64,000 nt of DNA from Octopus sinensis. Its lineage: Eukaryota. The position numbers were made by a program, and so were the translations under genes. Position 1 is the first letter of the stretch, and each line of letters begins with the position of its first letter. The DNA is taken from the NCBI RefSeq assembly GCF_006345805.1, contig NC_043019.1:18227360-18291359 (forward strand). The letters run 5' to 3'. Shown here one piece after another: positions 17,214 through 44,178 of this stretch. The notes under the pieces were generated by a model. The model was not told where the DNA came from. It made no database searches and saw nothing but the letters and a program-made list of their open reading frames with translations.

Positions 17214-17273
17214 CTAAGCTGTAGAAGATGTACTAGTGGCTCCAGGCTTCTTTGACTCTTCTGTAGCAGGTTC
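17214..17273 (-). CDS. NASP: NASP terminal coding exon 16 (EPATEESKKPGATSTSSTA*)
   Basis: Long pyrimidine tract then CTTTAAG acceptor, phase 0, TAG at 17214-17216; the end resembles vertebrate GATVESTAC; followed by repeat-poor, AT-rich UTR-like sequence. Confidence 0.75.
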   Translation of the reverse strand, partial: EPATEESKKPGATSTSSTA

Positions 17274-19904
17274 CTTAAAGAGAGAGAAAAAAAAAGGAAA
17301 AAATTTATGCAATAAAACAAAGAAATAGTAAGGTTTCACTATATTTGGAATTTACTGTATTTCATGGCATCAAAGATGCATTCCAATTTCATTATATTCA
17401 AGAAAAAAAAAAAAGTTTTTTGTGCATTAAAGCTCACGGGATGTCTGACCCTGCATACTGGAGGAGCTGGGGGTGATATTTTGAGGCATTATTTTGGGGG
17501 AGAAAGTGCAGCATATTTGGTATGGAATATGGTGATAGATGAAGAGACTTATTATAATGAAGCTTTGTTTTTGTTGTTTTAAAAGCAGACTGACCTAAAG
17601 ATTGGGTGATAGTTGTTGCTTAGCAACAATCCGCACAATTTTATTTTTTTTATCATCTACAAAAACAGTGTTGAATGTCTTTTGTTTTTAAAAAGGTCGT
17701 TGCACGAGGGAGATCTGGTTGATGTTCTTTGTTGGTCTGTAGGTGATTATGGACACCAGTTGATCGTTACTCAGGTCCTTAATGACCAATTCATTAAATT
17801 GCCTGCCGTTGGTTGGTTTTATTCCGGTCACTGCTTTCCCTTATTACTGTTGCTGTAGCAGGAGGACGGTGGTTTGCTTGCTTTTTTTGTGCCTCAAATG
17901 ATTTACAGTAATTGAAAGGGACCTGAAGGTTGTTTTACTGCTGTTGTAGAAATGAATTCAAAGCCACAGTCTTCAACAATGCAAATAACAAATGTTAAAA
18001 CTCAAATTGCTATGTGCACAGGGAACAGCAAGAATCAGAACATTTGACTCCCAGATTCCTTCTGAATACATCCCGCCAAATCCAAACATAATTCAAGAAC
18101 TTCTTTCAGATAAATGTGTGGCAAGAGGCTTGCTTCACAACCACAGGGTTCTAAGTTCAGTCCCACACATGGCATCTTGAAAAAGGTGTCTTCTACAGCC
18201 TTGGGTCAATCAAAGCCTTGTGAGTAGATTTGGCAGATGGAAACTGAAAGAAGCCTGCTATGTGTCTGATCAGTGCTTGAGAACCAGTGTTGGTGCGTTT
18301 GTGTTCCTATAGCTCAGTTTGGCAAAACAGACCGAAACAATAAGTACCAGGATGAAAAATAAATAAGTCCTGGGGTCAATTCACTTCAAGATGGTGTCCC
18401 AGTGTGGCCACAACCTAAGGAGTAAAACAAGTAGAAGATAATAGCCACACTTCATTCATTCCTGTTTGGGTCTGTCAGAATTCTGCAGAGTCTGAAGAAA
18501 GAATATGCAAGTCACTGTAAAGTGATTCTCACAAAACGTCCATTGTGGAAGACATTCACAAGATAATAGTTGAAATGTCGTAGAGAAGAGATTCTATGAA
18601 GACCAGTGCCAGAGAGCAGCAGGAATTACATGACCAGAGCACAGAGTCATTTCTAACAACTCACATCAATATCAAAAGGTCTTCATTGAAGGAACTCTAA
18701 GGAATGAGATGTAAAATGGTGAACCTTGTCTTGAACAGTACAGTGATTGTTTTAATAGAATACCAGATGACAGGAAGACTGCAGTATTGATTATGCAAGC
18801 CATTAGATCGGTACCCTAATGGCTGTTAGTGGACATTGTTAGAGAGATTAGAGTTTTAAAAAAAAATACACAGGTAAAATAAAAGTTGTTAAAAAGAAAC
18901 TGAAGTTAATTGTGAGGTGAGTTATGGTGGTTAAACAAAGCAAAACATTTGTTCTAAGAATTTAGAAAGTTTGAGCAACACGGAAGAAAGCATTTTTGAC
19001 AATGGAACTTGAAGTGACAAAGCTATAACTAACAGTATGCAGAATTTCTGGTAAGAAAAACTATTCATAGGGAGAAGAGAAGGGCTGCTTGCAAGAGCCA
19101 AAGCCAAGTCTTCTGTAAAGCATGACAGATGTTCTAACATTGTTTAGAGGATGAGCCTTCAATATTTTCCATCCACAGGTTTGTTCAACCCAATATCTAC
19201 TTCAAGTTCCATTATTAAAAGTGATTCAACAAAATTTGTTTCAGTGTTTCCATTAAAAATCCAACGTGATTGGTGTGGGGTGGGGTCGGGAGGAGACACA
19301 GAACGCATTTCCAATATTTGAGAATTATGACTGCAATTTGGTGCTTAAGTTTCAAATACTTTATTTTAGACTAAACCACCACAAAATTCAATAATTAATG
19401 CAAAAAGAGAGATAGGGTGCATGGAGAAAATGGTTTTAATTAGAAGGGGTTAAAACATTTAAGAATATACTGAAAGCTAAGGATAAAGTCTATTTTAGTA
19501 ATGGCACCCACACACACACTTGTAATCTAGTTATGAGGACCAGCACTCGACTGAAGATGAAGATACAGACATTTGGGTGCCATGACCAACAGACCAAAGC
19601 AGAGTGCCAGAAAAGTAAGCCCCACCGCCATTACAAAACTAGGAAGAGGAGATGAGTGAATGGAAAATAGGGGAAAAAAAAAAAAAAAAAAAACTATGAA
19701 GCCACTGCACAACATAACACACCAGATATACTCCAACACCAGAGATGAGTATGAAAAAGATGTAGGGAGGTGAAAAGAAAAAAATGAAAATGGTCAAAAT
19801 AAAGAAAAGCTGGCATTGGATATAAAAATATAAAAGCAAAAGCTACAGCAATGACGACAACAACAACAACATCAATAAGAGGTTTGTCTCAAGTTGGTCT
19901 CTAC

Positions 19905-20039
19905 CTTATTGCTTGGGGCAAGGTCACTGTTGGAATCTTTCTGTTCAGCTTTTGATGATGATGACGACGATGTGTTATCAACCGAACTTTCAGTTTTCTG
20001 TTTTTTGTCCTCTGAGCTCTCTTCTGTTTCTGGTTTTCG
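19905..20039 (-). CDS. NASP: NASP coding exon 15 (RKPETEESSEDKKQKTE...APSNK)
   Basis: Acceptor GTTGGCAG completes RRK|RKP (bipartite NLS-like). Donor AAG|GTAGAG at 19904; reading through the donor instead reaches TGA at 19872. Confidence 0.85.
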
Positions 20040-20899
20040 CTGCCAACAGAGCAAGCCAGATGTTAAGGTAACCCAGCTAAGCTAACTAAAGAAACACCAA
20101 CTAACTTAGCAGAAAGGAAAAAAAAAAAGGGGGGGGGAGATAAGTAGTCTGGAGGATGTGGTTCGATGCAAAGAGGGGACAGGTTTGTATTTTATTAGGA
20201 GAGAAAGAAAGAGTAAACTTTGCAACCAGATGCCTAGCCCTTTGGACAAATAACCATTTAATTGAGAAAAGTGGTTTGCAATACAAAATTCTATCAGTCA
20301 AGAAGTGGGGTACACTGATCAAGGGACAAGACAAAGCAACAGAATAACCTCACAACTATTGGCTCTTATTAATAAATTGTTATACTTAAAATTAAAAAAA
20401 ACTGCCCTGCTAAGTCTGGAGAAATAATGTAAGTCGACAGACCTGAGATATCATTCTGAGACAAAAACCATCCATGTGCCGTTGCATGCAGCAAATACCA
20501 AAGGCTCTGCGACTGGTGAGGAAGTCCCACCGTACAGTGCTACCCGGTTCAAAATAGTTACATTTCCCTCAAATCACACCCTACAGGTTAAAAGTAAAAG
20601 AAGTGTGGAAATAAGGATAGACTAAAAAATATAGAAAAGTCACAACTGGAAAAGCTGCCATCATGAACCTCCTCAAACAAACCATTTTAAGTGGGAAAAA
20701 AAAAAAAAAAAAATTCCTGGGATTTGAGGAAGGAAAAGGGGATACGACAAAACTAAAATAGCAGTATAAACTATCCTCAAGTCATGACCTCCCCATCAAC
20801 ACACAATCCATATTATAATCACAACTGTTCAATGACTCTACCTCCAGTATTTGAGTACTATTTCTTCCCCACCTTGTTTCGCAATTATGTGCTTACTCT

Positions 20900-20901
<2 letters not shown>

Positions 20902-20969
<68 letters not shown>
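20902..20969. repeat. (TA)n microsatellite
   Basis: Direct reading. Confidence 0.95.
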
Positions 20970-20978
<9 letters not shown>

Positions 20979-21769
20979 CAACTGACCTACAAATCTTCTG
21001 ATCAAACTATCAGAAATGTAAACCCCCCCCCCCCAATCATTACACAATAGTTTAAGATTTGGTTTGAATTAGATGTAAGTAAATCTTGGTTTATAAAATT
21101 AACCTTTTTGTTAAATTAGTATATTTTTTACTTAAGAATTTAGGAAAATAACTTGCAATTTATTTGGCAGAAAAATGTAAATTTTTTTTTTTTGAAAAAC
21201 ACCATGAAAATTTCATCACTTTAAAAGTAGCAAATTTTGAGAAATAAGGGGCAATTGATATATCATTTGGTATTTCAATCCAACCACGCAATTGAAACAA
21301 ATAGAAGCAAGAGTCCCTATAATGGAAATTCTTATTAGATGCAAAAGAGGAGGAGGAGGAGGAGGGGGTAATAAATTCTCAGCGGTGGTGCCCCAGCATG
21401 GCCGCGGCTTTCGGGCTAAAACATTTTTAAGGATTTAAGGGTCGCAGTATTTGACTGATACCGATTTAACAACCCCACAGAGGTGAAGGTTGACTTAGGC
21501 AAAATTTAATATTCGGAACCTAGACAAAAAGATGGAAATAAAAAGCACAAGACATTTTACTTTGATCATCCCTACCAATTCTGACATTTACCTGTTTCTT
21601 TAATAGAAACATTTTTACTAATAATATTAATAACACTGAACCTGTTAGCCAACAACAAAATCTGTCCATAATATGGTTAGGAAGGTTTGATAATTAAATA
21701 TGAAACAGTTGAGTATTAATTAACACCAAAAAGAAAAGAAAAGCAACAAAAGGAAACCAACCAACTTAC

Positions 21770-21811
21770 CTTTCTTCGTACAAGGTGAGATATATCTGTC
21801 GTTTTCACAGG
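21770..21811 (-). CDS. NASP: NASP coding exon 14 (PVKTTDISHLVRRK), start of the NLS region
   Basis: Acceptor ATTTGCAG, donor AAG|GTAAGT; 42 nt; conserved DISHLVR(K/R)K motif. Confidence 0.95.
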
Positions 21812-21946
21812 CTGCAAATAAAAAAAACAAATTTTAGTTTAGAGATAATATTTTACATAGAAAAGCCATGAAAATAAAACAGATTTTTTCCCCTTTCTAC
21901 CTACACATAAAATTGACTTTTTTTTCTTTTCCAACCTGAAACTTAC

Positions 21947-22108
21947 CTGTGAAGAAGATTTGGGGTCTACAGGGAGGATACTGCTGAAGCCTGTTGTGCT
22001 CCCTAAAACGTCTCCACCAGCACCACCACTGCTGCCGCCGCTGCTGCTGCTGCTGCTGGGACCAGCAAAACCTGAAGAGCTACCAGCACCCATCAGAGAA
22101 GAAGACAT
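21947..22108 (-). CDS. NASP: NASP coding exon 13, Gly/Ser-rich linker (MSSSLMGAGSSSGFAGP...KSSSQ)
   Basis: Acceptor TAATACAG, donor CAG|GTAAGT; 162 nt; corresponds to the SSTSGFTPGGGGSS region of vertebrate NASP. Confidence 0.88.
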
Positions 22109-23019
22109 CTGTATTAAAAAATAGAGTTAGAAAGTTTATATAAATTCCAAGATATGGTGGAAAGAAAATGCTTAACCCTTTGAAATACACTGCTTTTTTT
22201 TTTGTTTAATTCTGTAAATAATGAGGAATTTAGTAAAATAACTTAAGCTGGTGTTTGGACAATTTAACATGAAAGGTTGATGGAAGGTTTGAAATTAATG
22301 TAAAAAAGAAAAAAAGAAAAAAAAAAAAAAAGTAAAGATTGTTTTGATACTAAAACCATAGAAAACGGCCACTGCTTCTTTGAAACAACGTGGCCAATAT
22401 TTGAATGGATTTTATAACAGCAACTACTAACATACCAGATTAGGTTTCCTGTTTATTTCATATTGCCCGTGTCTGTGGAACATATTTCTTTTGCAGTTTC
22501 TATTTCCATAACCTGTAGCATTATCCAGTATGTGATGAGTGCAAGCAGAGCCGGTCCTTATATGCAACCCTTTTGATACCCACAAACTCCTGTTACTATG
22601 ATACAAACTTACTTTAAAACTTCCTATTTATGTTGCAAACACTGAACATTGATGCTATTTTATTAAATTCTTCACCATTCTCAAAATTTATTGAAACAAA
22701 ATGGCAGTGTATTCCAAAAATTTGGTAAGAAAAGGGTTCATATCAAAACTTGTTAAAGTAGTAAAACAAAGATTACAGAGGATAGAATACTGTGAATTGT
22801 CCACTCGGCGGCCAAACTGGGAGCAGTTTGGTCATTTAGGGCAACAGAGGAACCAATAGAGTCAAGAGTCAAACAACTCGAGCCTGTTACATCAGGATTG
22901 TATTTATTCCTTAAGAATACTTTACTCAGAAGACTTTGGCTAGATTTCACTTCAGGCTCTTAAAAATATTGCAAAGTATTAACTATGCTACACCACACTA
23001 GAATCACAAACATAGTTAC

Positions 23020-23097
23020 CATTTTTTCTGCAGCCTCTTTTTTAGCAAAAGCCTTCAAATCTGCAACCGTTTTCTTTTCTTCAATTGTATCTGTAAT
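23020..23097 (-). CDS. NASP: NASP coding exon 12 (ITDTIEEKKTVADLKAFAKKEAAEKM)
   Basis: Acceptor TTGTTTAG, donor GTAACT; 78 nt, phase 0 to 0. Confidence 0.88.
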
Positions 23098-23847
23098 CTA
23101 AACAACAAAAATATCTCAATGTATGTACGATGAGTACACATGTAAACAATACTGTATCAGTATTATTCGTTTAAAAATAATCCACCATCCACATGTGTTA
23201 ACACTTTCAGAACTTTAAAATGTACAAATGTTTAAGTGAATACCCAACAAATTTTTTTATGGAACTGTTACGTAAGACATGACACCTTCACAAAAGGGCT
23301 TCATTGCAAAGAACACGATACAAAATAACTGAATTTGATTGAAAAGTCCAATAAATATCTTGAAGTTTATCAAGAGAAGGATAAAATAACACACACGTAT
23401 ATGATATATATGGCAGGCTTCTTTCAGTTTCTGTTCACTAAATCCAATCAGGTTTTGGTTTGCTTGGGGCTAAATTGTATGCCACTTGCCCAAGGTGCCA
23501 CACAGTGGGTCTGACCCAAAAGCCAAAAGTAGTTGCCATGGGATCTAAAAATTGAAAAAGGGAGTTTAATCCATTGGCTGGTTTAACCATCACCGACTTA
23601 AGTACAAAATGTGACAAGCTGATGGGTCAGGGGTCGTCTAGACTAGAAAAGGTTCCTTCCTTCAACCACTAGGGACTGAAAAATAAACCTCAAAAAGCAT
23701 TTGACTACTTGTTGCCAAAGAACATCAATATTCTTGGATTTTTGGACTTACATTAGGTTTCAACTCACTACCTTACCTCTTCAAATATAAATTCCACTTA
23801 CTACTGACCTGACCTGGCCTAACACACACACACACACAAATCCGTAC

Positions 23848-23930
23848 CTTTTGTGTGATATCTGGGACTATTTCTTCTAATTCTTTGATTTCTGTCCGAG
23901 CATTGTATACGGTTTCAACATCTGCAGTTT
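23848..23930 (-). CDS. NASP: NASP coding exon 11 (ETADVETVYNARTEIKELEEIVPDITQK), coiled coil
   Basis: Acceptor TTATTCAG, donor AAG|GTACGG; 83 nt; matches KEIEELKELLPEIREK. Confidence 0.92.
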
Positions 23931-24770
23931 CTGAATAAATAAAAGTAAAAAAAAATTTTCAGTTAAAAACCAATTGTTTGATGAACAGAAGACTTGTTGG
24001 TTTATTTGGCTGACACGACTGAGACAGAACTTTGATACCAGAAGAGTAACAAGATTACCAAGTCCATTAAAACACTATAAAGTTAACATTGTTTAACCCA
24101 TGGTCAATTCTGAAATATTTTTTTGATGAAAGCTTTTCAAGGCAAAAGCATTTTGTTTTTTAAAAAAAGAGAGTGTATCTATGAAGTTACTCAAAGCAGT
24201 CCTTTTTGAAGGTGTTATTTGAGGAAGATGTTTAGCTATTACTTTTAGCAAGCAATGAAATCACAGACACTCTTAATTTGGCACAAGACTAGCAATTTTG
24301 AAGGGAGAAGTCAGCCAGTTACATTGGCCACAGCAGCACTGGATCAGTGACTGCAGAGAGATGAAACACCACAAAGCATTTATTCTGATGCTCTACCGAT
24401 TCTGTAGACATGTAGAATGAGACAATAGAATGGACATTACATGTGATGGGAGATACTGGGGGATATGGGGGTAGAAGTGTTGGTTTTATTGACCCAGTAT
24501 TTTACTGGTACTTAACTGAATTTATTTAAGTTCTCCATTTCCATCACTTCATTACATTTCAGATGAGATACAAATTAACAAAGCACAGTCTGTACCATTT
24601 CCACAGAAATTATTCTTTATAGGCACTTGGTAAGGTAGAATAAAGTGTTCTGCTTATACACTACAGTAACCAGTCAAGCATCTCATTCCTCCAGACATAC
24701 AGAGTTGGAAATCACAAAAGGAAACAACAACAACAACAACTAATGTAACTCAGCGAAAACAATGACTTAC

Positions 24771-24812
24771 CTGTGCTGTCTTTTAAATGTTCTATAGATT
24801 TATTTAATTTAT
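24771..24812 (-). CDS. NASP: NASP coding exon 10 (DKLNKSIEHLKDST)
   Basis: Acceptor GTTTCCAG, donor GTAAGT; 42 nt, phase 1 to 1, keeps the frame. Confidence 0.85.
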
Positions 24813-26397
24813 CTGGAAACACAAAAATCAATGCATTAATATTTTTATAATCATCAATCATAGATACAACAGTTTAAAGGGTTTGTGGAGATCTCACCAA
24901 TGACCAACTAATCTAATGTCTGGTATTTCAAAAGTAACCAAAATAGGTGTGCTTGTATAAAATCTTTAAAGCTCAAAAACTGACAACAAACATTTTAACT
25001 GAAAAAATTGGAAGTAAACAGGTTTCTTTTTATTTCCTCCCTGTATTCATTGATTTTCAAAAAAAAAAAAAAAAAAGACTGAAGCAGGCATTTCCAATGC
25101 TTTTAACAAAGTTTGTTTATAGAGAGAGAGATGTGCTGAAAATGCCACTCCTAATACAAAATGCTGTGTAACTCTGCACATGAATAAGACGGCCATAAAA
25201 CTGTCAGGAAGATTGGAAGAGGTCAACAGAATCCAGTTTAGCAAACAGATAAGGCATGAGTGAGTGTACTGGAGGGGGGGGATACCTGCTTGTAGAATGG
25301 CTGTGCTGGACCTTTCCTACAGCAGTCTCACTGGTATTATACCAGACAAACTGCAGTGCTCGCTCGTCTGTGAGGCATCAACACAAATGGGTGAAAAAAA
25401 AACAACACTAAAAGCTGTGAAATAAAAGCAGAAAAAGATGTGTTGACCTTCATGCCTTTTCAAGAGACATTAGCAATGAGTGAGACTGCTAGACAATGGC
25501 CATTTGAACTGAAGTGGACACCTTGTGCAGGACAGTCGAATGGCTTCTAATTTCAGGCTGCCAATACCTTAATGTTGACCACTCTCCCAGAAAATCACCA
25601 TCAATCTTTCTATATAACTTATAACCACAAGCCATGAATGTTTTGGGAGTTTTCTGAAGATTTAGCAAATAGAAACATCATTTAATGCCCACTTTTCCAT
25701 ACTTTTAGGGGTCAGAAAGGATCTCTTGAGGTAGATTTTCTACAACCTGATGCTCTTCTCGCTTCCAAGTAAAATATTTTCTTATAGGCTAGACTTTTTT
25801 TTTTCTTTCATGAAACATTTGAAGTTAAACCTTGCTAGCGATATGGAAAAGTGGATGTGAAATGATGTATTAGAAACACACACAAGCACGGAGGAGACTT
25901 CACTCCAATATTATAAATCTAATCCCTACTGATACAAATCTGCCCTTCCCTTCCATGCTTCAATTGTTGGGCGGAATTTTGTTGAGGCAGTTTCTCTTAC
26001 AGCTGGATGCTCTTCCTGTCACCAACTCACCAACTTCCAGGAAAGGTAATATTTCTCCACGACCAGACAACTCGTGATGTCAAGGTAAGCATATTTCCAC
26101 AAACACAACAGGCTTCCTTCAGTTTTCCCCTCTACCAAACGCACTCAGGCCATATTGGAAAACACTGGCCCTAGATGCCATGCAGTGGGACCGAAGCCAA
26201 AACCATGAGATGGAGAAGCAAGCCTCTAATAACAAAGCCACACCTATAATCAATCACACTTTATAACCATCGTCAATGTAGTTAATCAAGAGAAACATTT
26301 GATATCAAAGACAAATATTTTTTTCCTTTTTTAACCAAAGACTTTCTAATTAAAAGTGGTTGGGGAGATAGAAATAGTAAAAAACAAATATACAGAC

Positions 26398-26495
26398 CTA
26401 TTTTGGCTTCTATAACCGAAATTGCTGCTTTGAAATTCTCTACTGCAGAATCATGGTTACTAGCAAACACATGGACTAACCCCAATTGGTAATAA
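26398..26495 (-). CDS. NASP: NASP coding exon 9 (YYQLGLVHVFASNHDSAVENFKAAISVIEAKI), TPR4
   Basis: Acceptor CTTTCAG, donor G|GTCTGT; 98 nt; matches [29 protein letters not shown]. Confidence 0.93.
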
Positions 26496-27799
26496 CTGAA
26501 AGATTGTTAAAGAATCTATAAACATCCAGGGAGGGTCGTCTCAGAGAGACTAACATACGTGTATAGGCACAACTGCTCCTTATTTTCCCAAGTAAAACCA
26601 TCTTCCTTACACCACTCCAAATCATGAAGATACTAATTTATTTTTAAAAATCAGATTAAATTCATAAAATGCTTGCCTGTACCCAAAGGACAGTGAGAGG
26701 TTAAGATACTAAAGCACAAGATGCTACAAGGTCAAGTGTTCAAATCCTATTAAACCCATATTGTGCCCCTGAACAAATGCCAGTCTTCTTTAAACCTCAC
26801 AGTGTCAGATTTCTGTTGAAATATGACTGCCCAGTTTCAATTGGTTTAAAGAATCTTAATAAATCAACTCATTATTAAGCTATTCTGTAGATCTTGGAAA
26901 ACAAAAACCGCTTTCAATTAGCAGTAAAATTAAGCATTTGGAGACCACCACTATACATACATACACGAGATAAAGAAGCCCTCACTGGTGCCCTGTGTTA
27001 GTATTATCATTATCTCTGATTAGCAGATCTTGTAAAATGTTGGCAACTTTAGATTGACTTATCTCAGACACCTGAGCAATAACAATCTGCTCATTCTTGC
27101 CAGGTAGGAGGACTGAAAGAGGGAGAAAAACAAAAAACAGTGGATTTTTGTTGAGATTTCCTTTACCATAACATGAAGCTAATGAAAAACAGAAATTAAT
27201 CCGTCTAAAGAACCAATGTATTGTAAATAGCTTTACAAATTCATATCTAAAGAAATAGACTGAAGAACTAATGAGAGTGATTATCGAATTCTCCCTCGTT
27301 TATCACAGATCCAGGATAACATGGTACGCTGAGTAGTGAACCATGTTACCAATTATCATGGATTGATCTTGGATAACACAGGTTCACATTCAGTCAAATA
27401 TTCTGCTTGTATTACAAAAATGTACCCCAGCAACCATCTAGAATACACCGACTATCACTCGTGTTTTACATGACAATGTTTGGAGGCTGCATATTTGTAC
27501 CCATCAACACGGGACTAGTGAATAGGAAATATATGAAGGTACCTCAGCCTAACAAATGATGCAGGTGAGTTTATTCTCTAAAGGAAAAGGTTGAGATTAT
27601 CCAGAAACTACAGGATGAAAGTTTCGTAGCTATGAGCAAATAAATCTACCATTTGTTCTAATTACAAAGTGAATGGAGGTGGTTCATTTATTGGGAACTG
27701 AACCCCCGAACAAACCACATTTTATTGACTTCCCTACTTATGAAAAAACCCTTATTTTTCTGTTATTTTCAAAGAGGAGGAGGGGAAAAAAAAGGATAC
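26496..27799 (-). other. U12-type (minor spliceosome) GT-AG intron, NASP intron 8
   Basis: The 5' splice site reads GTATCCTTTT (U12 consensus RTATCCTTT). The 3' end reads TTCTTTAAC-AATCTTTCAG, a near-consensus U12 branch site (TTCCTTAAC) 10 nt from the AG with no long pyrimidine tract. Confidence 0.85.
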
Positions 27800-27890
27800 G
27801 TTTCAGCTATTTCTCTTTCCTCTGGATTTAAATGTTCTTTCTGAATTTTAAGACATTCTTTGATATCTTCCACTGCCAAATCATAGAGAC
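27800..27890 (-). CDS. NASP: NASP coding exon 8 (GLYDLAVEDIKECLKIQKEHLNPEEREIAE-T)
   Basis: Acceptor GGTTGCAG, donor GTATCCTTT; 91 nt; matches [30 protein letters not shown]. Confidence 0.93.
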
Positions 27891-28940
27891 CTGCAACCAG
27901 AGAAAGTAAAGGAAAAAAAGATAAATAATGACAAAATTTCTTTGTAAATAAGTCCAATGGAATGACTGGCAATTACTAGTCAATATCTTTTGACACAAAC
28001 TTATCAAAATCACTAAACATTTTAAACACTTTTTTATGGTGGTGTGTAGGTGGAAGGAGGAAGTTTAGGACACAACAAGAATGGGTTGGGGGTACTTAAG
28101 TGATGGAAGGACATGGCCAGTCTGTTCCAAGGAGCAGAGACCATTATAATAGTGAAAGAAAAGGCAGAGAGAGAGGAGACAATATTCCTGTTGGCCCAGA
28201 AAATAGAGTGCATTCATTAGTGATAGAATACTAATTAGTTAAGTGGCCTTTTCAGGATACAAGTTGAATATTATTTCAGTAAACATTTTAGATTATTTTG
28301 AAAATTAAATCACAAAAAAAGGCAGAATGATGTCCTTAGAATGTTGCCAGTGACAAAAGTAATTGACTAATTTGTTTGGATTATTAAAGCAACAAGCTGA
28401 CAGAATTTCTAACGAGTTGCACCAAATATTTAACGGTATTTCCTCTGGTTCTTTATGTTCAGAGTTGAAAATTCCACCAAGGTCAACTTAGCCTTTTATC
28501 TGTTTGGAGGTCAATAAAATAAAGTACCAGTCTCACAATGGGGTCCATGTAATTGACTTCTCTCTCGCTTAAAATTGCAGGCCTTGAGCCAAAATTAAAG
28601 ACTTATTAGTATTAGCACTCTAATTAGTAATAATAATGGATTCTCAGCCCTAGGTGAAGAAAGGGCCCCCATGCCCAACAGTGGGCTTAAAGAATGCAGC
28701 AGAAAAAGCAATATTCCATTGACCCCTGAGAATCAAGAATTGAAAAATCATTTTGAATATTCAAGACAACTTCTGCAGGAAATATTTCCACTTCTGGATG
28801 ACTGATATAACAACATCAACTGTGTCATTAGTCATGGAACGTTTACTAAATAAGCCCAGGTGGCAGGCAACTAAACCACGACCATCAAGGTAACCTGACA
28901 GAACAAAGGAAATTTTAATGACTTTTTCTCAGGAACTCAC

Positions 28941-29014
28941 CAGTTTCCAAACCGACTTCGCCCAGCTTTAAGTAGGCTTGTGCTGCCTTCAATTGGGATT
29001 CTTTATCTTTTCTC
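28941..29014 (-). CDS. NASP: NASP coding exon 7 (RKDKESQLKAAQAYLKLGEVGLET), SHNi-TPR
   Basis: Acceptor TTTTTCAG, donor GTGAGT; 74 nt; matches AQAHLKLGEVSVES. Confidence 0.95.
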
Positions 29015-29749
29015 CTGAAAAACAATTACACAAGAGCAGAAATTTCAATAATCAAAGACAAAAAAAAATTCTTAAAACTATTTTTTTAAATTCCAGCCTA
29101 ATTTCGAACACCCCCTCATCCCACAATAGCAATCGACTCAAAAGTGATTTTTAATTAAGTAATTAATATAAACTCATTACATGAACACTTTTGTGATATT
29201 CAGTTCTAGTTTGATAGAACACCTATTTTAAAAACCATTATTTTAGCAAATAACTCCCCTGTTATTCTATGAAGCTGATATTTGGAATGTATTTTATTAA
29301 GCCTGCCACCTGTAAATTTTTGGCCCTTAAAAAATATAAACATTGTATTCTCATGAAAAATATAGTTGAGCAAGGGTTTACATAATTGTAGGATAATTAA
29401 GGAAACCTTAGCTTCTAAACAAAGAATGGATTTAAGATCATAAACTTGTGTTGTCTGGATGGAAAAAAATCAGAAAGTAAAAGTTAGAAGAAACCTAACA
29501 GCGTATCTGGCAAAGTGAGCGGCAGAGCGCCAACCAATGTACCAGCAACTCATTGCAAGTGGAGAGTAACCAAAATGTGAAAACTAGAGACCCCTTTATA
29601 TTACACCTGTTCATTGGATGACAAATTACATGTCTAAGTAAGGTCTCCCACTAGAGCACCACATCAAGTTTTCTATTTATGTTAAACAGTCTTAAAGATA
29701 AGCAGGGTTTTTTTTTTCCTTTTAGCATTTACAGATAAGTATTCTCAGT

Positions 29750-30400
29750 GAAGCCCATCCAGCACATTTCATTTCTTCTATGTCCATTAACAGACAGAAG
29801 AACAGAAGTGTTCAAAGACTTGGATACTTCATCTGAGAATGGCCAATATATCCAACATGAGAAGGCAATGTTGTATGTTGGACACATGATGAGATGTGTA
29901 CAATTACATGGTCACAATTCAGAACATTTAAAGCTCCTTCAACCTGGAACGAGTCATTTCCAGTTTATTTGTTCAGATGCTACAAACAACACCTAAGGAG
30001 ACCGTACCAGCTAAGTATCACATTAACTAGGCTCCACCCTACCACTGGATCAATTGCAGAGCCTTTTAGAAAGGGAATGACAGGGACCAGCACAGCTGAG
30101 CTCTGTGGAAACCCCATACAACTGAGGACCTTCCCTTTCTAATGAAACGTATAGCTTACTGCAGAGACAGTTCAAGTGGAATCTATTGAGATCAAACAGT
30201 CCACATCTCCAGATCACCACAAAGAAAAGTTAACAGATCTGTAGACTTCCAACTTTATTTTCAGGCTGAATATCCATTCTGCTGATGCTTTTGGCAATTC
30301 TGCTGTTGACAATGGGGACAATTCCTGAGAGGATGCTACCAAAGTATCGGCAACTATCTCGCATGCACAAACCCCAAAAGCCCACCCTATTACATCAACC
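29750..30400 (-). mobile_element. RTE (BovB-like) LINE 3' remnant in NASP intron 6
   Basis: Minus-strand YFGSILS, VNSRIAKAS, ISLKIKLEVYRSV and LNRFHLNCL. Confidence 0.65.
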
Positions 30401-30759
30401 CTTGGACATTACCATTTCAAATCCTAAGATTAAGACCATTTACTCCATTTCCATGGTGTGTAAGTGACCAAAATCATAACATTCCTCACCAAACAAGATG
30501 CCAGTCCACTACAGGGTTATTCATCTACAACTGGAGCATTATGAAATGAAGGGTTTTATTCAAAAACACAATGCAACTGCATGGTGTGGGAATTGAAACC
30601 AGAATCTTGCAATCATGAGTGCAACACTAACTACTAGGCCACACTGTCTGCATAACACGTAAACCATACTGGATTATATCACACACACACAGTGTTACTG
30701 CACATAGCCTAGCACTGGTGCATTTCACTAATACAGTAACAGTTTTACTATACCATAAC

Positions 30760-31070
30760 TGGAACTACTCTGTTGGTTAGAATTACGAGGGTTCCAGGGG
30801 ATCCGATCAATGGAACAGTCTGCTCAGGGAAATTAACATGCAAGTGGCTGAGCACACCACAGACATGTGAACCCTTAACGTAGTTCTTGGGGAGATTCAG
30901 CAATGACACAGAATATGACAAGGCTGGGCCCCTTTGAATTACAGGTAAAACTCATTTTTGCCAGCTGAGTGAACTGGAGCATCATGAAGTGAAGTGTCTT
31001 GCTCAAGGACACACCATTCCACTGAGAATCAAAGTCATGAGCTGACTACCTCAACCACTGAGCCATGTAC
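30760..31070 (-). mobile_element. tRNA-derived SINE (family C)
   Basis: Minus strand GTGTCCTTGAGCAAGACACTTCAC...TGCTCCAGTTCACTCAGCTGGCAAAAATGAG; a plus-strand piece of the same family lies at 63935-64000. Confidence 0.65.
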
Positions 31071-31268
31071 CTTCACCACCACCACCATAGCAGCAGCAAT
31101 TCAATTATTCTTCCCCCCCCCCATAAGCAGTAGCGCCAAGGCATTGTTTTATGCCTTCATTTACTTGGGAGAGAAAAGTGAATCAGCCAACACAGTTTCA
31201 AATATATAAACAGACACACATGCAATGAAAAAAGGGGGAAAAACAAACAACAATAATAATAGACCTAC

Positions 31269-31342
31269 TTTAAATATATTATTTTAGCAAGTTCCAGACT
31301 CTCCCAGGCCAATTGGAGATTTGTAACATCATTACCAGCATC
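31269..31342 (-). CDS. NASP: NASP coding exon 6 (DAGNDVTNLQLAWESLELAKIIYL-K)
   Basis: Acceptor TTTCAAAG, donor GTAGGT; 74 nt; matches NLELAWDMLDLAKIIF of vertebrate NASP. Confidence 0.95.
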
Positions 31343-32649
31343 CTTTGAAATAGAAAAGTTACTAAATATCATCAGACAGTTGATACAGTGACCTGTCAGT
31401 GGTTGGAGAGGAAGGGCTGGAGTGAGACAGGGGAGGGCATGGAGGAATCGAAATGCAAGAAATGCACAACAGCTGTGAGGCCCAATGTCAGCACAATCAA
31501 TGTGGTGATGTTGAGTAACCTCTAAGATACACAATTGAAATCGCTTCTGCCCAGACTAAAAGAAAATTACTGGATCACTGAACGACAAGAGTAAGAACAA
31601 CAACATAGACTCTAAAAAGTTCGATGAGAGGCATGGGGATGGTTGTGTGGTTAAGAAGCTCACTTAGCAACCATGTGGTTTGGGGTTCAGTCCCAATGCA
31701 TGGAACCTTCAGTAAATGTTTTCTATTGTAGTCTACCAATTTCATTCACAAGGCTTTGGTTGACTTGGAGCTGTGTGGAGGACCATCGAGAGAGAGTGTC
31801 TGTATGATCACTCCACTGATTGGATACCAGCGATGGTTCATTTACATCCCTGTAACAATGGTTCAGCAAAAGAGACATAGAAGACAAAGCTGTGAACTGG
31901 GGTCAAATTGTTTGACTACATCCTTCAAGGTGGTGCTCCAGCATGGTCACAGCCCAGTGAGTGAAACAAAGAAAAGATAACTGCTATTGTGAAATTCAGC
32001 CAAGTTGAATTTCTCCGAGAGAGGTTTCTGGTTGAAAGGATTCACTGGTCAGTCAGAGAATCCTTAACACATATACAATCACAACACCACAATCCACTGA
32101 AAACTAGTCGACATGCTCGGACAACAATGTCGCAGCCTGACACCTGGTTCCCTGTAACCTTATTCTGCTAGGAGATGCAACATCCTGTTCCGACCGAGGA
32201 ACCCTCACCCATCTACTTTAACAACTGACCAACACTGAACAGTCCATCTTTAAACGATGAGGATTTTAATAGACTTTTTACATAAAAACAGAATCCTGTC
32301 ATGGACGATTTGCTTTAATGTTAATCTTAAATTTCTGGGAATGAAAGGTCCTCATGTAATCAGAACCAGCTTCTATTAAAAAAAAAAAAAAAAAAAAAAA
32401 AAGATTAAGTATAAAATTCAGTAAAAAACACTCACACTCGTAATGGAAGGATGGGTGAGCGAGCAGAGATTTATGGAAGAGAATGTGTTGAAGGCTTGCT
32501 GATGCTTAACAAGTCCAATTTCAAACTATGAGGAATGAGCAGAAGCTGGTCAGTGTCCTTGTTTTACCTCCCTTTTCTTTTATCTTTGAAAAAGGCTTTT
32601 GTCCAGAGGATAGTGAGATATCAGGTTTCACGATCAGTGGCATGAACAG

Positions 32650-33500
32650 ACCACTGGTGGTGGTCAATGTGGCAGCAGCAAGGGTTTTCTTCGGAAAGTC
32701 CTTGTATCTCTCCCTTGGTGCTTCCCTATCACAGTGACCAGAGGAGAGTTCACAATACAGTAGGGTCTCAGGAGGATGAGGTTTATCCTTTGCACAGGTC
32801 ATGTCCTACCAAGCAGTTAGAATCTGACCTCTATGTCTTCAGAAGGGATCAAAAGTACTTATGATTGAAACAACACCTGGCAGTAAAACACTGGCCCAAT
32901 AGGTTTTGTCCAACTATACCCCGGTCACACTATTATGCAGTTTGTACACAAGCATCAGGCACTCAACTTCACCAGCCTGTTCTTCGTCTGGCCACTTCAC
33001 TTTCATAACACCCCACTGTTTAAAAGATCCCATCAACCACTTCAGGAAGACTTCTGGACATTATTTTCTGAGGATTCTTCCAGACTTCTATTGATTCCAC
33101 ATTTTCCTCCTAGGTTTCTTATTTTTGGAAATCTCCTATAGATTCCACCATAAGAGCTAAGTTACTGCATGGAAATGGCCTTTGACAGAATTACACGTAG
33201 GGGTAGCAAACTGAGGAGGCACTAATTTGACAGAGCTTTGTTTACTATTCTTAACAAGTCAACCAACACCAGAGAAGCTCCTTCAATTGTACAATCTTAC
33301 TTCAGCCTTGATGAAGCAGAGCTATGATGAAAGATATTGTCAATTAAGGGCTACATTTTCTAAAGGGTTCATCTTTGAAGAGGGAAGGATCCGAGATGTG
33401 ATTACTATCATCTCTAGGAAGTCAAGTACAGGGACCCCAATATTGGTTCATGGCTCTTAATTGTTTAGTCTCAGATCATCTTTGCTGGAAGAGTCTTATG
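32650..33500 (-). mobile_element. CR1/L2-like LINE 3' remnant in NASP intron 5
   Basis: Decayed RLYN*RSF and LMLVYKLHN (DLI.VYKIL.G-like) segments; clade assignment is tentative. Confidence 0.4.
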
Positions 33501-33831
33501 AACAAAGGGATTCTAGTCATAATGATACAGTCTATTTCTAGGAGTGCTTGAACAACAGCAACTAATTTGTGCACTAACATACACACACAATCTAGGTTGA
33601 CAAAGAAAAAGAGATAGAAAGAGGTGATGAATTTCTTGTCCAAGTTTGTTGCCTAGACAAGGATTCATTGCCACCAATCAATGAAAAAATAGTCACTGGT
33701 GTTGCAAATAGCCATCTGGCTGAATAAAAATCCGATATATACAAAGCAATATTTAAAATAGCCATCTATGCATCATGATGTACGCATACTGTTGTGATGG
33801 CCAAACACTCGGTTAATTAAGTGAAGGAACA

Positions 33832-34150
33832 TTAACCCTTTCATTACTATAGTTCTAACCAAAATACACCCCTCATGAGTTTCAATTAAATTCTAAAATA
33901 ATCATGAATTTAGGCTTGTTTTATTAAATAACTAACTATTTTACTTATCAACATATTAATGTGATATTTGGAACATAATTAAAGAAAGGGTTCTTAATCA
34001 ATTCTATTGCATAACTTTTGTTTACAGGTAAATTGAGCAAAAGGTAAAAATATTAAAATTTTGTTTAAACATCACCATAGAAAATGAATCATCAGCTAAT
34101 ATTCAAATGGGTATGCAACAAAATTTTGATAAAGAAGAATTGTGCACATC
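33832..34150. mobile_element. Possible piggyBac-like MITE (TTAA-CCCTTT end)
   Basis: Starts TTAACCCTTT; a similar end at 22172 and AAGGGTTAA-type ends near 16955 and 19450; the second terminus is not clearly paired. Confidence 0.3.
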
Positions 34151-34572
34151 ACTATATCATCAGTTGAATTTAATGCACAACAGGTGTACCATAAAGGTGG
34201 AATAAAGTGAAATACTGGAATCCACCGTAAGTTTGACCGAACTAAAGAAATCGGTCAAAAAATAATATAAGGCCCTGGTTATGGTATGGAAGTGATAAAT
34301 TCCAGACCACATCATTCCCTAGGCCATGCTGACTAACATTATTTTCCCTGTATAAAAACTAAATCCACAGCAGTACTCAGTATTTGCTTCACAAATTTTC
34401 CAAACTTTGATCCCCCATTCTGTGTTTGTTTACAATCTGCGTAAATTTGTTTCCAAAGTGATCGCTTAAAACAAGCATACTGAAAAAAAATAAAGTCTAA
34501 TGGTTTCACTTCCTAAGAAAGACTATAGATAAACTATCTCCTCAGAAAAATTGCTAATAAAAACATTTTTAC

Positions 34573-34608
34573 TTCATTCCGATGTAAAATCGTCTTTGCT
34601 GTCGCCAT
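34573..34608 (-). CDS. NASP: Candidate alternative first coding exon of NASP inside intron 5 (MATAKTILHRNE)
   Basis: Strong start context GCGGCGATGGCG, 12 open codons, donor GAA|GTAAAA in phase 0 matching the exon 6 acceptor; sits in a local CpG-rich patch. No transcript evidence available. Confidence 0.45.
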
Positions 34609-35189
34609 CGCCGCTTTGTTTCTTCAGAATCGCTGCTTTCGGTTAACGGATAAAAAAATATCCTATTCATTATTGTACACCACGTGCTTTTGTACCTCAT
34701 TCATTCTTTTTCTCGATATCTCCCTATTTTCCATTGAAAAAGCTTTAAATTCGGAATCAATGCTTGATAACATCAAACTCCTATCCATTTTCAAAGTTGA
34801 AGAAAAATCGATGCCGAAAAAAATGTGGAAAAAAATCTCCCAAAATTCACTGAGTTGAGATATCACGTCAAGCAATGTCGGATACTATAACCCAACTATT
34901 TACAAAGTGAAATCACGTGTTTTAACGAATGTACCAACGAGATTTGGGTTCAAATTTACATTTAAATAACAATAGGTTCTCTCGGCCAGATTGGTATTAT
35001 GAACCAAAATATTTTTGGTTAGTAACGAAAGAGCCCAATATGTAAAATAATGGTGTGAAGAGAGAAGGTAAACATAAGATCAAAGAATGAAATAGTAGCA
35101 CAGAGAACTTAAGTATTTAGGGTCAGTATTGAGGGGAAAGGGAGAAGAAAGTGCATGCAAGCACTTGGGACTACCAAAATGGAACTCAC

Positions 35190-35347
35190 ATGTTCATCTT
35201 CATCTGGATCCTTTTCTTCTGGTTTCTCCTGGTTTTCAACTGCCTCATCTTGTGAGGAAAGAGACTCTGAATTGTCTGTCCGATCTTCATCTCCAGTTCC
35301 TTCATCCTCTTTGGAAGCAGCTTTAGAAGAAGCACCATCATCTTTTT
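35190..35347 (-). CDS. NASP: NASP coding exon 5, acidic region (EKDDGASSKAASKEDEG...DPDEDEH)
   Basis: Acceptor TTTCTAACAG, donor GTGAGT; 158 nt; ends in phase 0. Confidence 0.9.
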
Positions 35348-35732
35348 CTGTTAGAAACATGCATATGCAGACATGCTTATATATATATATATCTAAATAT
35401 TACAGAAACGAATTCAGGAACAAAATTGGTGCCACTCCTTAATCAGGTTACAGAAATGCTTACATGGAGGAAATTGGTTGCAAAAGCTAAAAGATTACCC
35501 AGAAGATATTGGTAACACTACAGGACAGATGTAGTTAAGTCGAATCTCCATGAGCATTTTTCATTTAAGAATCAAAACAACAGACAGTACAATGTTTGAT
35601 TTAGTCTTCCACAGATCATTATGGTCATGTCACAAGTTCCACAACTCATCCTGTACCTCTTAACTCTCTTTTTCTGCCCCACTCTAAACAAAATATAAAG
35701 TACGACTGGAAAAAGCCTTCAACCAACATATA

Positions 35733-35917
35733 CAGGGGGGTGGCAGAAGTAACACCCTTTCACATTCAATAACTTTTATAATAAATGTTTATTAAGTAAT
35801 TTTTTTTTTAACACAAACTTATTGCATTACTTAAAGAAATGAATAAGAAACTAATGAAAAAAAGTCCATTAAAACTAGAAAACTCAAAGAAAAGGATGTT
35901 ACTTCTGCCACACCCTG
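35733..35917. mobile_element. Tc1/mariner-type MITE (185 bp) in NASP intron 4
   Basis: TIRs CAGGGGGGTGGCAGAAGTAACACC / GGATGTTACTTCTGCCACACCCTG, TA on both flanks. Confidence 0.85.
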
Positions 35918-36692
35918 TATATCAGCTATTATTATTATTATTATTATTATATAGAGAGGTTTGCGTCTCAATGTGTACACATATGCACAATGGCACTGTC
36001 CCAGTGCGAGTTAAAATCACAACTTACTAAGTTACATCAGAAGACAATCAGAGACTGAGGTTTTGACTTCTAAGTAAAATTGCTGTCTTCCACACAGAGA
36101 GGATTGTCCTTTTCGGGTGGTGGTGCCACATAAATGCATGCATACCAGTGGCATGTAAAAAAAAGCACTCAGCACAGTTAAGTGGTTGGATTAGGAAGGA
36201 CATCCAGATGTAGAAATCATGTGACAACAGACAATTGGAGTGTGGACAACTCCTTGGCTGGTCAGCTCCCTGTCAATCTGTCTGAACCATGCCAGCATGG
36301 AAAGCGGATGATGGTGAGGGTGGATTCCTCTAAGAACTGTTCCCAACTTCACAAATTGCATTCTTATTAACTGTAACATCTACCTCCTGACTTTGCTAAA
36401 TTCCAGTCTACATAAAAAACATGGAATGAATTCTCTGGCACTGCCATTCCATTTAGAAATCCATAATTTTGCAATGCTGATGTACTTTAAAGATTTTGTT
36501 TCTGAGCAGCAGTTTTAAATATGAAATATTTGCTTCAGAAACCCACAAATTGTAAACAAAAAATTTGGTTACATGTGTAAACAAGGGATGGTGGCTGAAT
36601 GGATTAAGAATCTGCCAAATTACCTTCTCTACCATTTGAAAAGAAGTGTTTCCATTGTTAAGAAACAGACATTCAATGGAATGGAAACTTAC

Positions 36693-36788
36693 CTGAATCT
36701 TTTTCTGATTTCTCATTTTCTCCATCATCTCCTTCCTCTTCATCATCATCATCGTCGTCTTCCTCCTCTTCAGCAGCAGCTGCTTCAG
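36693..36788 (-). CDS. NASP: NASP coding exon 4, acidic region (AEAAAAEEEEDDDDDDEEEGDDGENEKSEKDS)
   Basis: Acceptor TTCTGTAG, donor GTAAGT; 96 nt, phase 1 to 1; D/E-rich insert typical of the interrupted TPR2. Confidence 0.9.
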
Positions 36789-38608
36789 CTACAGAAGTAA
36801 AACATTCAAAGTATAGGGATGTGAAATTAACATGAAGACCTTCTCCACAAAGACTCTCTCTGGAAAGATATTTTCCTGACAAAGTGTATGTGAAAGAGAT
36901 ATCACTGGGCTATGAACAATGTCATTGGACTGCTAGACTCCAGTTTTGGTGGTGTTAAGCTTCATCAGCAACAGAGACTGAACCAGTCATTCAAAGCTGA
37001 CTCAGAGCTACTGCTTTTATATATAAACAGCAAATAAATTTGCAATGTGTAAAACTTTGTCAAGCTCAAATTAGAGACAGACTAAATGAGGATTGTAATA
37101 TAGGTGTGTCAAATGACTATTTTAACATATAAGGAACTTTCTTTTTTGGCAAGAATTATGTTAAAAAATATGGGAGTTTCTTATACATGGATAGTATTAC
37201 AATCCCTTACAAAACCTTTTTTCAAATTTTAAGCCCCCAGAGTTAGGGAGTTCTTTATACACGTTAAAATATATAACAGGCTTGTCTATACTTTAAAGTG
37301 AAACCTGTTTCTAGAGAGAAATTTTTGACAGCTCTTTGTGAGCTACAAACAATGGATTCAGTCTCCGTAGCTGAAAAAGTAGAACGATACAGAAAGCCTT
37401 GTCCAATGGTCTAATGATGTCATTCATAGTCTAGACACAGGAACAGGTGTGGCTGTGTGGTCAAGAAGTTTGCTTTTTAGCCACATGCTTTTGGGTTTGA
37501 TTCCAGCATGCGACACCTTGGGCATCTCCTATAACAGGCTCAGGCTAACCAGTCTTGGCAAACAGCAATGGAAAGAAGCTCGTGTGTGTGTGTGTGTGTG
37601 TGTGTGTGAGCAGGGGTTTGTAACTGTTTTCACATTGCATGGTAGTTATAAATGTATGTTGCTGTCATTTGTCTCCAGTATTCTGCAAGAACCTGTCTGG
37701 CCATGGGAAGATAACACCAGGCTTAGAATCAGATGAGAAGGACATTTAACCAGAGAAAGTCTGTGACCCATGCAGGCATGGAAAAGCAGATATAAAAATG
37801 AGGAGATACTTCTCACAAAGAAGCTCTCTCTCCATGTTGAGAGCATACACAAGCACAATAGAATTGTGCACCCCCATCAATATTTTACTCATCGTTGCTT
37901 ATAGGGTCTAAATATTAAGCAACAAAAATAAAATTAAATTACCCCCACCCAGCTGTGGGTCCCTCAAGAAGTGCAAATTACATTCATTAGTGGCTTCAGT
38001 TTCCACCCTTGCTTCAATGTAGAAGGGCAGATCGAACTGGGTGAATATAACAATTATGAGCCTCAAAGATATTTGTACAATGAGTATTAGGATAAAGTTC
38101 TAGGCTGCTAACTATATAGTCACAAGTTCAAATAACACTAGCATTTTATTGCGTGACCAACACACAGAGATTTACTCGATCCAGTTAGCAAAGGGCAGAC
38201 AAGAATTTTCAGATTTCAAGCAAATTGGCGAGCCCCTGGTAGAGTTGTCAGCACATTTGCAAAATACTGTAGTATTTCTGGCTTGTTGTTCAACCTTCCA
38301 TCTTGTCAGGATCACAAAATAAATACCAGTTAAGTATTGGGTGCCAATGTAATTGATTTACTCCCTAAATGGCAGTGCTCCAGCATGGTCACAACTTTTC
38401 AGCTGGAATACATAAAGGAATCCCCTGGAATAGAAATACCTCATATGCATATTTGTCCCACCCTGAGTTGTCCAGACTTCCTAACCACTGATGTTAATAA
38501 TTGTCCACCCAACATGAGTTAAACACTTCACTGAACTAATCTAGAAATAAAAGATGGCAAAACAAAGAAACAACAACAACAACTGACTGGCAACAATCAT
38601 CGACTTAC

Positions 38609-38721
38609 CTTCAAGACTTTCAATGACTTTCGAGTCTAGCCTGGCCAATTCTAGCAAGGCATGACCATAAGAGAAGTAGGCAGCAGCACATTCAAATGCC
38701 ATCTCCCCATAGCACTTGGCC
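38609..38721 (-). CDS. NASP: NASP coding exon 3 (AKCYGEMAFECAAAYFSYGHALLELARLDSKVIESLE)
   Basis: Acceptor TTTGACAG, donor GTAAGT; 113 nt; matches the NASP signature [24 protein letters not shown]. Confidence 0.95.
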
Positions 38722-40054: not shown

Positions 40055-40430
40055 AGCTGTGATACCAGTGCCGGTAGCACGTAAGAGAACCATCTGAACG
40101 TGGCTGTTGCCAGCACCACCCTGACTGGCAGTCGTGCCGGTGGCATGTAAAAAGAACCATCCGTTCGTGGCCATTGCCAGCCCCGCCTGGCCCCCGTGCC
40201 AGTGGCATGTAAAAAGCACCATCCGATGGTGGCCGTTTGCCAGCCTTGTCTGGCACGTAAAAAACACCCACTACACTCACAGAGTGGTTGGCGTTAGGAA
40301 AGGCATCCAGCCGTAGAAACATTGCCAGATCAGACTGGGCCTGGTGCAGCCTTCTGGCTTCCCAGACCCCAGTTGAACCGTCCAACCCATGCTAGCATGG
40401 AAAGCGGACGCTAAATAATGATGATAATAA
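40055..40430 (+). mobile_element. 5'-truncated RTE LINE 3' UTR with (GAT/AAT)n tail
   Basis: Closely similar to 61770-62089; contains GGCA(C/T)GTAAAAAGCACC tandem units and ends CCCATGCTAGCATGGAAAGCGGACGCTAAAT-AATGATGAT. Confidence 0.8.
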
Positions 40431-40480
40431 TATTAGGGAGTATAACTCCAAACTTACAGGGAACATAAATATATAAAATA

Positions 40481-40727
40481 TAAATTAGGGATAAAAATCA
40501 CTATTATGCAACTGAAACAGTGATAGGCATAAATAACAAATAAAATATTTTTGTAAAACAAATAGATCACAAAAAGTATAAAAATGAATAATCAATATTT
40601 AATAAGTAATTCATTTTTACACTTTTTGTGATCTAGTTATGTTTTATAAAAATATATTTTATTTGTTATTCATGTTTTGGTTTATGTCTATCATTGTTTG
40701 AATTGCATAATAGTGGTTTTATCTCTA

Positions 40728-40732
<5 letters not shown>
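40481..40732. mobile_element. AT-rich foldback (near-perfect 250-bp palindrome) in NASP intron 2
   Basis: The arms pair along their length, e.g. TAGATCACAAAAAGTATAAAAATGAAT / ATTCATTTTTACACTTTTTGTGATCTA; central loop about 19 nt. Confidence 0.85.

Positions 40733-40734
<2 letters not shown>

Positions 40735-40796: not shown

Positions 40797-40798
<2 letters not shown>

Positions 40799-44147: not shown

Positions 44148-44178
<31 letters not shown>

Follow-up and report, generated by a model that had tools for sequence, protein, structure and literature searches.

A probable U12-type intron in the NASP gene of Octopus sinensis and its molluscan orthologs

Introduction

Which spliceosome removes intron 8 of the NASP gene in Octopus sinensis? 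NASP belongs to the SHNi-TPR histone chaperones, which have a SHNi-TPR domain, four TPRs, the second with an acidic insertion, and a DISHLVRRKRKP motif at the C terminus, and intron 8 lies where the coding sequence passes from TPR3 to TPR4. U12-type introns carry a 5′ splice site /RTATCCTT (+1 to +8), which fits the U2-type donor poorly and pairs weakly with U1, and a branch site of the form TCCTTRAY near the 3′ splice site, with an optimum distance of 11-13 nt. They lack a long polypyrimidine tract downstream of the branch site, and their removal needs the U11, U12, U4atac and U6atac snRNPs. A sequence-only reading of this locus had proposed that intron 8 is U12-type, that the other 14 NASP introns have ordinary U2-type donors, and that retention of intron 8 would truncate the protein before TPR4; it had suggested scoring with U12 position weight matrices (PWMs) and comparison with orthologous introns as checks. 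Here, we describe the intron, its scores and its orthologs, and consider how old it may be.

Results

The NASP gene and its exons

The window (the whole 64-kb stretch of DNA that was analysed) holds 15 minus-strand exons that are joined by their splice sites into a single uninterrupted reading frame. A library search returned a protein of 491 aa (P0143) identical to this 15-exon join with a 19-codon first exon added, which starts at 44495 and has the donor AG/GTAAGC. P0143 is XP_029650155.1, named in RefSeq as nuclear autoantigenic sperm protein isoform X1 of Octopus sinensis and encoded on GCA_006345805.1 chromosome CM016881.1 at ~18.24-18.27 Mb. Human NASP structures in the PDB match the octopus protein with E 6.6e-50 and Pfam SHNi-TPR matches it at 8.9e-10; besides the SHNi-TPR domain, an acidic stretch and TTDISHLVRRKRKPE are present. 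The 16-exon join and the homology identify the gene as NASP and the intron of interest as intron 8 of 15, as the sequence-only reading had named them. Since the join equals the RefSeq protein, the boundaries of intron 8 are already in the public annotation, and the octopus RefSeq model is correct. The coding span and the two exons that flank the intron are as follows:

17214..44495, minus strand: NASP coding span, 16 coding exons and 15 introns, ATG at 44495, TAG stop ending at 17214
27800..27890, minus strand: exon 7, G-LYDLAVEDIKECLKIQKEHLNPEEREIAE-T, second half of TPR3, 3′ end supplying the AC of the split Thr codon
26398..26495, minus strand: exon 8, T-YYQLGLVHVFASNHDSAVENFKAAISVIEAKI-, TPR4, Pfam TPR_1/TPR_2 at residues 257-285

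The residue encoded across the junction, Thr259, is the third residue of this last TPR, and the sequence EIAETYYQLG was kept in all seven octopus isoforms or orthologs examined. The two isoform differences both fall away from intron 8. In isoform X2, residues 127-135 are missing, as would fit the use of another acceptor 27 nt into exon 5 (..TTCTTCTAAAG/CTG; window 35320-35347, minus strand), and the residues missing from isoform X3, 427-471, correspond exactly to the 135-nt exon 15 (window 19905-20039, minus strand).

Long (TA)n microsatellites, with (CA)n/(GT)n ones close by, lie in introns of the gene at ~40740-40870, at 20900-21000 (minus strand) and at several other sites, and these surface as YIYIYI and CVCVCV runs in the frame translations. 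At ~46 kb, a little upstream of the NASP ATG (44495), the AT skew switches sign, which suggests a divergently transcribed neighbour on the plus strand in the region ~46000-60000. The three longest stray ORFs of the window had no Pfam match, and an Rfam scan of the 64-kb window gave no snRNA or other family at gathering score. The span of the NASP gene is ~5.3 kb in the nemertean Lineus longissimus (L011), ~13 kb in chiton and oyster, ~16 kb in Argonauta and ~27 kb in Octopus sinensis.

Splice signals of intron 8

On the minus strand, exon 7 ends between 27800 and 27799 as ...GAA ATA GCT GAA AC/GTATCCTTTTTTTT, with the intron starting GTATCCTTTT, and exon 8 begins between 26496 and 26495 as ...ATAGATTCTTTAACAATCTTTCAG/T TAT TAC CAA TTG GGG. 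The 3′ end of the intron can be divided as TTCTTTAAC-AATCTTTCAG (in full, GATTCTTTAACAATCTTTCAG), followed by T TAT TAC CAA. The features of the intron are listed here:

26496..27799, minus strand: intron 8, 1304 nt, GT-AG, phase 2, probable U12-type, splitting the Thr codon AC/T
27791..27799, minus strand: putative U12-type 5′ splice site, GTATCCTTT, 12-mer AACGTATCCTTT, +13.9 bits
26506..26514, minus strand: branch-point motif TTCTTTAAC, 12-mer GATTCTTTAACA, +9.6 bits
26507 and 26508, minus strand: candidate branch adenosines, at -12 and -13
26496..26497, minus strand: 3′ splice site AG

The donor is a perfect GTATCCTTT, preceded by a C at -1. The branch motif TTCTTTAAC departs from the consensus TCCTTRAY by one change, C-to-T, which would form a G.U wobble against U12 snRNA. 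Ten bases including the AG follow the motif, placing its second A at -12. The coordinates and both strings quoted in the earlier reading were exact. Between the branch motif and the AG there is only AATCTTTC, and the pyrimidine fraction from -25 to -4 is 0.64, compared to 0.59-1.0 for the U2-type introns of the gene. A search for conserved elements within the interior of the intron found none.

Donor and branch-site scores

The PWMs were derived from the human column of Table S2 of Olthof 2019, which lists 77 minor introns, just 44 of them with GT donors; the matrix scores below thus refer to a human training set. On the U12 5′SS matrix the intron 8 donor scored +13.9 bits, which is inside the 6.4-17.7 bits spanned by the human minor donors and at their 27th percentile. 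The other 14 NASP donors, which are of the GTAAGT, GTGAGT and GTAGGT kind, scored from -4.7 to -17.5 bits on the same matrix (intron 1, -5.7). Conversely, the intron 8 donor matched CAG/GTAAGT at 4 of 9 positions, the lowest of the 15 introns, and has no G at -1 or +5, whereas the others matched at 5-9 of 9. The two statements of the earlier reading about donors, that intron 8 has a U12-type one and the remaining introns ordinary U2-type ones, both hold on these figures. Counting both strands of the window, only 3 of 7121 GT sites scored as high as the intron 8 donor.

The BPS scored +9.6 bits (27th percentile of the human minor BPS) with the branch A at ~-12, and its placement beats 99.4% of shuffles of the same 3′ region (p = 0.006). 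Since 3 of 13 U2-type NASP introns also have BPS-like 12-mers towards their 3′ ends, the single-species BPS evidence is weak, and the donor carries most of the weight. By published standards, minor introns have a 5′SS score >50 and a BPS score >65 (Olthof 2019). MIDB gives 90.9 for the human donors CACGTATCCTTT and GACGTATCCTTT and 80.8 for AATTCTTTAACA, the BPS of a human minor intron in RANBP17, all above these limits (Olthof 2019); the octopus BPS differs from the RANBP17 one at its first base only.

Taken as strings, the motifs occur in the window no more often than expected: RTATCCTTT was found once (2.0 expected), RTATCCTT three times (5.4 expected) and TCCTTRAY ten times (12.7 expected). 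With frequencies at or below chance, the counts were dropped as stand-alone evidence. A U12-donor-like GTATCCTCC (12-mer GCAGTATCCTCC) at 21973-21981 on the minus strand, in NASP exon 12, scores +15.0 bits, above the real donor. It is coding sequence (..FSSILPVD..) with no matching branch site or use evident, and is probably a chance match, so that the motif alone is not diagnostic. A near-consensus branch-like GTTACCTTAACA at 20061-20072 (minus strand), in the 3′ region of intron 14 (plain GTAAGT donor) and 21 nt from its end, and a second GTATCCTT at 39211-39218 (plus strand), within intron 2, likewise look like chance matches.

These observations could be taken to mean that intron 8 is a U2-type intron with an odd donor, removed by the major spliceosome, its U12 resemblance being coincidental. 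Its termini are GT-AG, the motif occurs at chance frequency in the window, other NASP introns hold BPS-like 12-mers, and a pyrimidine content of 0.64 in the 3′ region is not clearly below that of U2-type introns. Against this stands the poor donor, with 4 of 9 matches to CAG/GTAAGT and the two missing G's. The weight of the U12-type assignment lies in the coincidence of the donor with an independently fixed exon end, plus deep conservation. The exon end is fixed by the reading frame, by the public protein and by alignment with human NASP (AET/HYQLG); the conservation is described next.

Orthologous introns in five molluscs

A first protein search with the 67-aa joined peptide gave two fragments, and a profile search was then used. 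Searching a representative library gave mostly generic multi-TPR proteins, but still returned full-length NASPs, including the window's own, and a full-length profile search gave named orthologs, of which the loci of Argonauta hians (L008), Liolophura sinensis (L009) and Saccostrea cucullata (L010) were read. The fragment search gave a cuttlefish Logan contig (L002/L003) with exons identical to the NASP protein of Acanthosepion pharaonis; a transcript-length cuttlefish contig encodes a protein (P0211) that reads EIAESYYQLG, i.e., is precisely spliced. Together with O. sinensis, five molluscs from three classes were thus compared, and exon 7 is conserved at the cuttlefish, Argonauta, chiton and oyster loci. 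The introns are listed with their 5′ and 3′ ends:

Octopus sinensis: 5′ AAC/GTATCCTTTT, 3′ GATTCTTTAACAATCTTTCAG/T, 1304 nt
Argonauta hians: 5′ AAC/GTATCCTTTT, 3′ TTTTCTTTAACAGTACTAATCTAG/C, 685 nt
Cuttlefish: 5′ GTC/GTATCCTTTT, 3′ TTTCTCTTAATTCTCCAATCAG/T, 237 nt
Liolophura sinensis (chiton): 5′ GAC/GTATCCTTGC, 3′ TTATCCTTAACCGTTTGAAG/A, 521 nt
Saccostrea cucullata (oyster): 5′ AAC/GTATCCTTCA, 3′ TTTTTCTTAACTTGCTATCAG/T, 185 nt

Codon position and phase of the intron are identical in all five species. Scores are 12.9-15.8 bits for the donors and 7.4-12.6 bits for the BPS, whose branch A lies at -11 to -15. The 8-nt GTATCCTT is invariant in the five orthologs, and similarity stops directly after it. 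At the other end, a CTTAAY branch motif is found at -11 to -15, with TTAA invariant, and the shuffle p values of the BPS across the five species were 0.006, 0.003, 0.026, <5e-5 and 0.0006. The lowest BPS score, 7.4 bits in the cuttlefish, is at the 5th percentile of the human training set; this motif has two deviations from TCCTTRAY (one in the octopods). The intron interiors have no significant similarity, even between the two octopods, and the cuttlefish donors of neighbouring U2-type introns differ from their octopus counterparts.

This pattern would be expected from purifying selection on an extended U12 donor and on a position-constrained branch site, and a U2-type intron would not readily account for it. 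Positions +4 to +8 of a U2-type donor would not be kept under neutral drift, and yet the 8-nt donor string is the same in cephalopods, chiton and oyster where every other intron base has diverged, and the branch motif has been held in place in five of five species. We consider removal by the major spliceosome extremely improbable. Slightly less remote, and still very unlikely in our judgement, is a “minor-like” or hybrid intron that either spliceosome could remove, in which case NASP output would not depend strictly on minor splicing. Such classes, with sites spliced by both machineries, are described in parts of the literature (PMC11347168, PMC10853781), and the weak cuttlefish BPS would suit one. 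However, the donor has the full consensus in every species and very poor U1 complementarity, and under the MIDB rules a strong minor 5′SS with a BPS >65 makes an intron minor, not hybrid. On the available sequences the position is U12-type in all molluscs sampled, which agrees with the class that the earlier reading had proposed for the octopus.

Distribution beyond molluscs

Vertebrate NASP / N1-N2 (human sNASP, PDB 7V1K) is the orthologous protein, with the same TPR layout as the octopus protein. The two genes share the flanking introns, phase 1 before xNY/QY... and phase 1 after ...IENRM/EAKI, but a single vertebrate exon corresponds to octopus exons 7 and 8 fused, with AETHYQLG uninterrupted. 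Accordingly, the vertebrate genomic ORFs (P0003-P0017, P0028) carry ENY...AETHYQLG...IENRM within one exon, starting in a polypyrimidine tract and ending in a GTGAGT-like read-through. The minor-intron lists for human and mouse do not contain NASP, although they do contain its alphabetical neighbours, since the vertebrate junction lacks an intron. The nemertean L. longissimus (L011) has exons 7 and 8 fused as well, and so do contig P0026, which is amphipod-like and 71% identical to Hyalella azteca, and four invertebrate contigs (L001, L004/L005, L006). The fused exons of vertebrates and several invertebrates had suggested a cephalopod-specific gain of the intron, which is ruled out by the chiton and oyster introns.

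Two protein models appear to read into the intron. In the Magallana gigas model K1RN77 (P0190), the junction reads LLAET-YPFSCYQ...AFLDLFR-HYQLG, which fits a read-through of an in-frame 81-nt intron starting G TAT CCT TT; eight bases before the AG, TTCCTTGAC can be spelled by the FLD codons. For Branchiostoma floridae, represented by a protein model only (P0191), the sequence reads LLAES-YPCIVYSGKR and then jumps to exon 9, which fits ten codons of translation into the intron, with exon 8 skipped and a G TAY CCN TGY donor at the phase-2 position. With a GTRAGT donor in phase 2, translation would stop at once, so both read-throughs favour GTAYCC-type donors. Both models also fuse two tandem or haplotype copies. 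They resemble the known mis-annotation of U12 introns by gene predictors, in contrast to the correct octopus RefSeq model. Judging by P0191, the amphioxus position is probably also U12-type. The question that the sequence-only reading had raised about other lineages thus has an answer: U12-type in the molluscs sampled, probably so in amphioxus, and no intron in vertebrates. The U12 introns at this position range in length from 81 nt (inferred, Magallana gigas) to 1304 nt.

Discussion

Class of the intron and its expected splicing

We conclude that NASP intron 8 is very probably a canonical U12-type intron with GT-AG termini, excised by the minor spliceosome; its donor, branch motif, A at -12, C at -1 and phase 2 match the published properties of the class. 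The intron agrees with the criteria of Olthof 2019 and, in its phase 2 and non-G -1, with the phase and -1 biases of Moyer 2020. Like the GT-AG U12-type introns of U12DB, MIDB and IAOD, among them those of human FHIT/ARMH1 (donor xACGTATCCTTT) and RANBP17 (BPS AATTCTTTAACA), it has the donor consensus /GTATCCTTT and a branch motif within one base of TCCTTAAC at 11-13 nt from the 3′ AG; it is also non-phase-0, is a lone minor intron among many U2-type introns, and has deeply conserved signals. In contrast to those genes, its host gene NASP is not a minor-intron gene in human or mouse.

In the mechanism that these signals suggest, the U11/U12 di-snRNP would recognise the donor GTATCCTTT by U11 pairing and the branch site TTCTTTAAC by U12 pairing, with a G.U wobble at the C-to-T position and an A 12-13 nt from the 3′ AG bulged out. 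U6atac would later replace U11 at the donor, and U4atac/U6atac.U5 would complete catalysis. With so little for U1 to pair with at the donor (4 of 9 positions matched, G missing at both -1 and +5), the connection of TPR3 to TPR4 is expected to require minor splicing in all annotated NASP isoforms. If the intron were retained, translation would meet a stop codon early:

27769..27771, minus strand: in-frame TGA on retention of intron 8, ...EIAETYPFFSPPPL and stop, 10 codons into the intron

The retained sequence reads ...EIAE-TYPFFSPPPL-stop, and the TGA lies far upstream of the last junction. An unspliced transcript would be expected to undergo nonsense-mediated decay, or else to give a protein devoid of TPR4, the helix after it and the basic motif at the C terminus. 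The truncation at TPR4 that the sequence-only reading had predicted agrees with the computed stop, with the cut at the third residue of the last TPR. It had also described U12 introns as slow, often rate-limiting and enriched in chromatin genes, which as general properties of the class is partly overstated: many minor introns are efficiently spliced (Olthof 2019), and the functional biases of minor-intron genes have been attributed largely to gene age (Larue and Roy 2023).

Age of the intron

On present sequences the intron is old: it is shared as U12-type by cephalopods, chiton and oysters, and probably by amphioxus, and appears to have been deleted precisely in vertebrates and some other lineages. 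If the amphioxus intron is confirmed, it predates the protostome-deuterostome split, with precise deletion in vertebrates and several other lineages. We also considered that the intron was gained as U12-type on the molluscan stem, rather than being ancestral to bilaterians and lost elsewhere. Exons 7 and 8 form a single exon in vertebrates, Lineus longissimus and the amphipod-like and other invertebrate contigs (P0026, L001, L004/L005, L006), and all genomic confirmations of the intron are molluscan, as such a gain would have it. However, the Branchiostoma floridae model is the expected product of a predictor at a G TAY CCN TGY donor, minor-intron gain has been described as extremely rare (Larue and Roy 2023), and precise intron loss is common. 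A molluscan gain is thus a possibility that we regard as doubtful, and we place the ancestral, bilaterian origin at roughly twice its likelihood.

Relation to earlier work and significance

We found no paper in the literature linking NASP to minor introns, and the supplement text of Moyer 2020, Olthof 2024 and Larue 2023 gave no per-intron mollusc data. Molluscs are relatively rich in minor introns, and O. sinensis was a reference species in the survey of Larue and Roy (2023), in which intronIC was run on >3000 genomes. Because that survey included O. sinensis, NASP intron 8 has very probably been classified already in its data, undiscussed. What is new here is the recognition of a minor intron in NASP outside vertebrates, its mollusc-wide conservation, its loss in vertebrates, and an explanation for two mis-annotated models.

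The known mechanism of minor splicing is unchanged by the NASP intron, which is an ordinary example of a well-known class. It is nevertheless a well-supported minor intron from a gene family missing in vertebrate-centred catalogues, and accounts for the wrong older NASP models of oyster and amphioxus. It also offers a clean case of U12-intron loss by precise deletion, not by conversion to U2-type. The most far-reaching interpretation, which we think rather unlikely in its entirety, is that of an ancestral bilaterian U12 intron that has persisted for >500 million years in molluscs and apparently in amphioxus and was cleanly deleted in vertebrates, so that the supply of an H3-H4 chaperone would be tied to the minor spliceosome in molluscs but not in vertebrates. 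In its strongest form, if true, regulated retention of the intron would tune NASP output in proliferating or germ cells.
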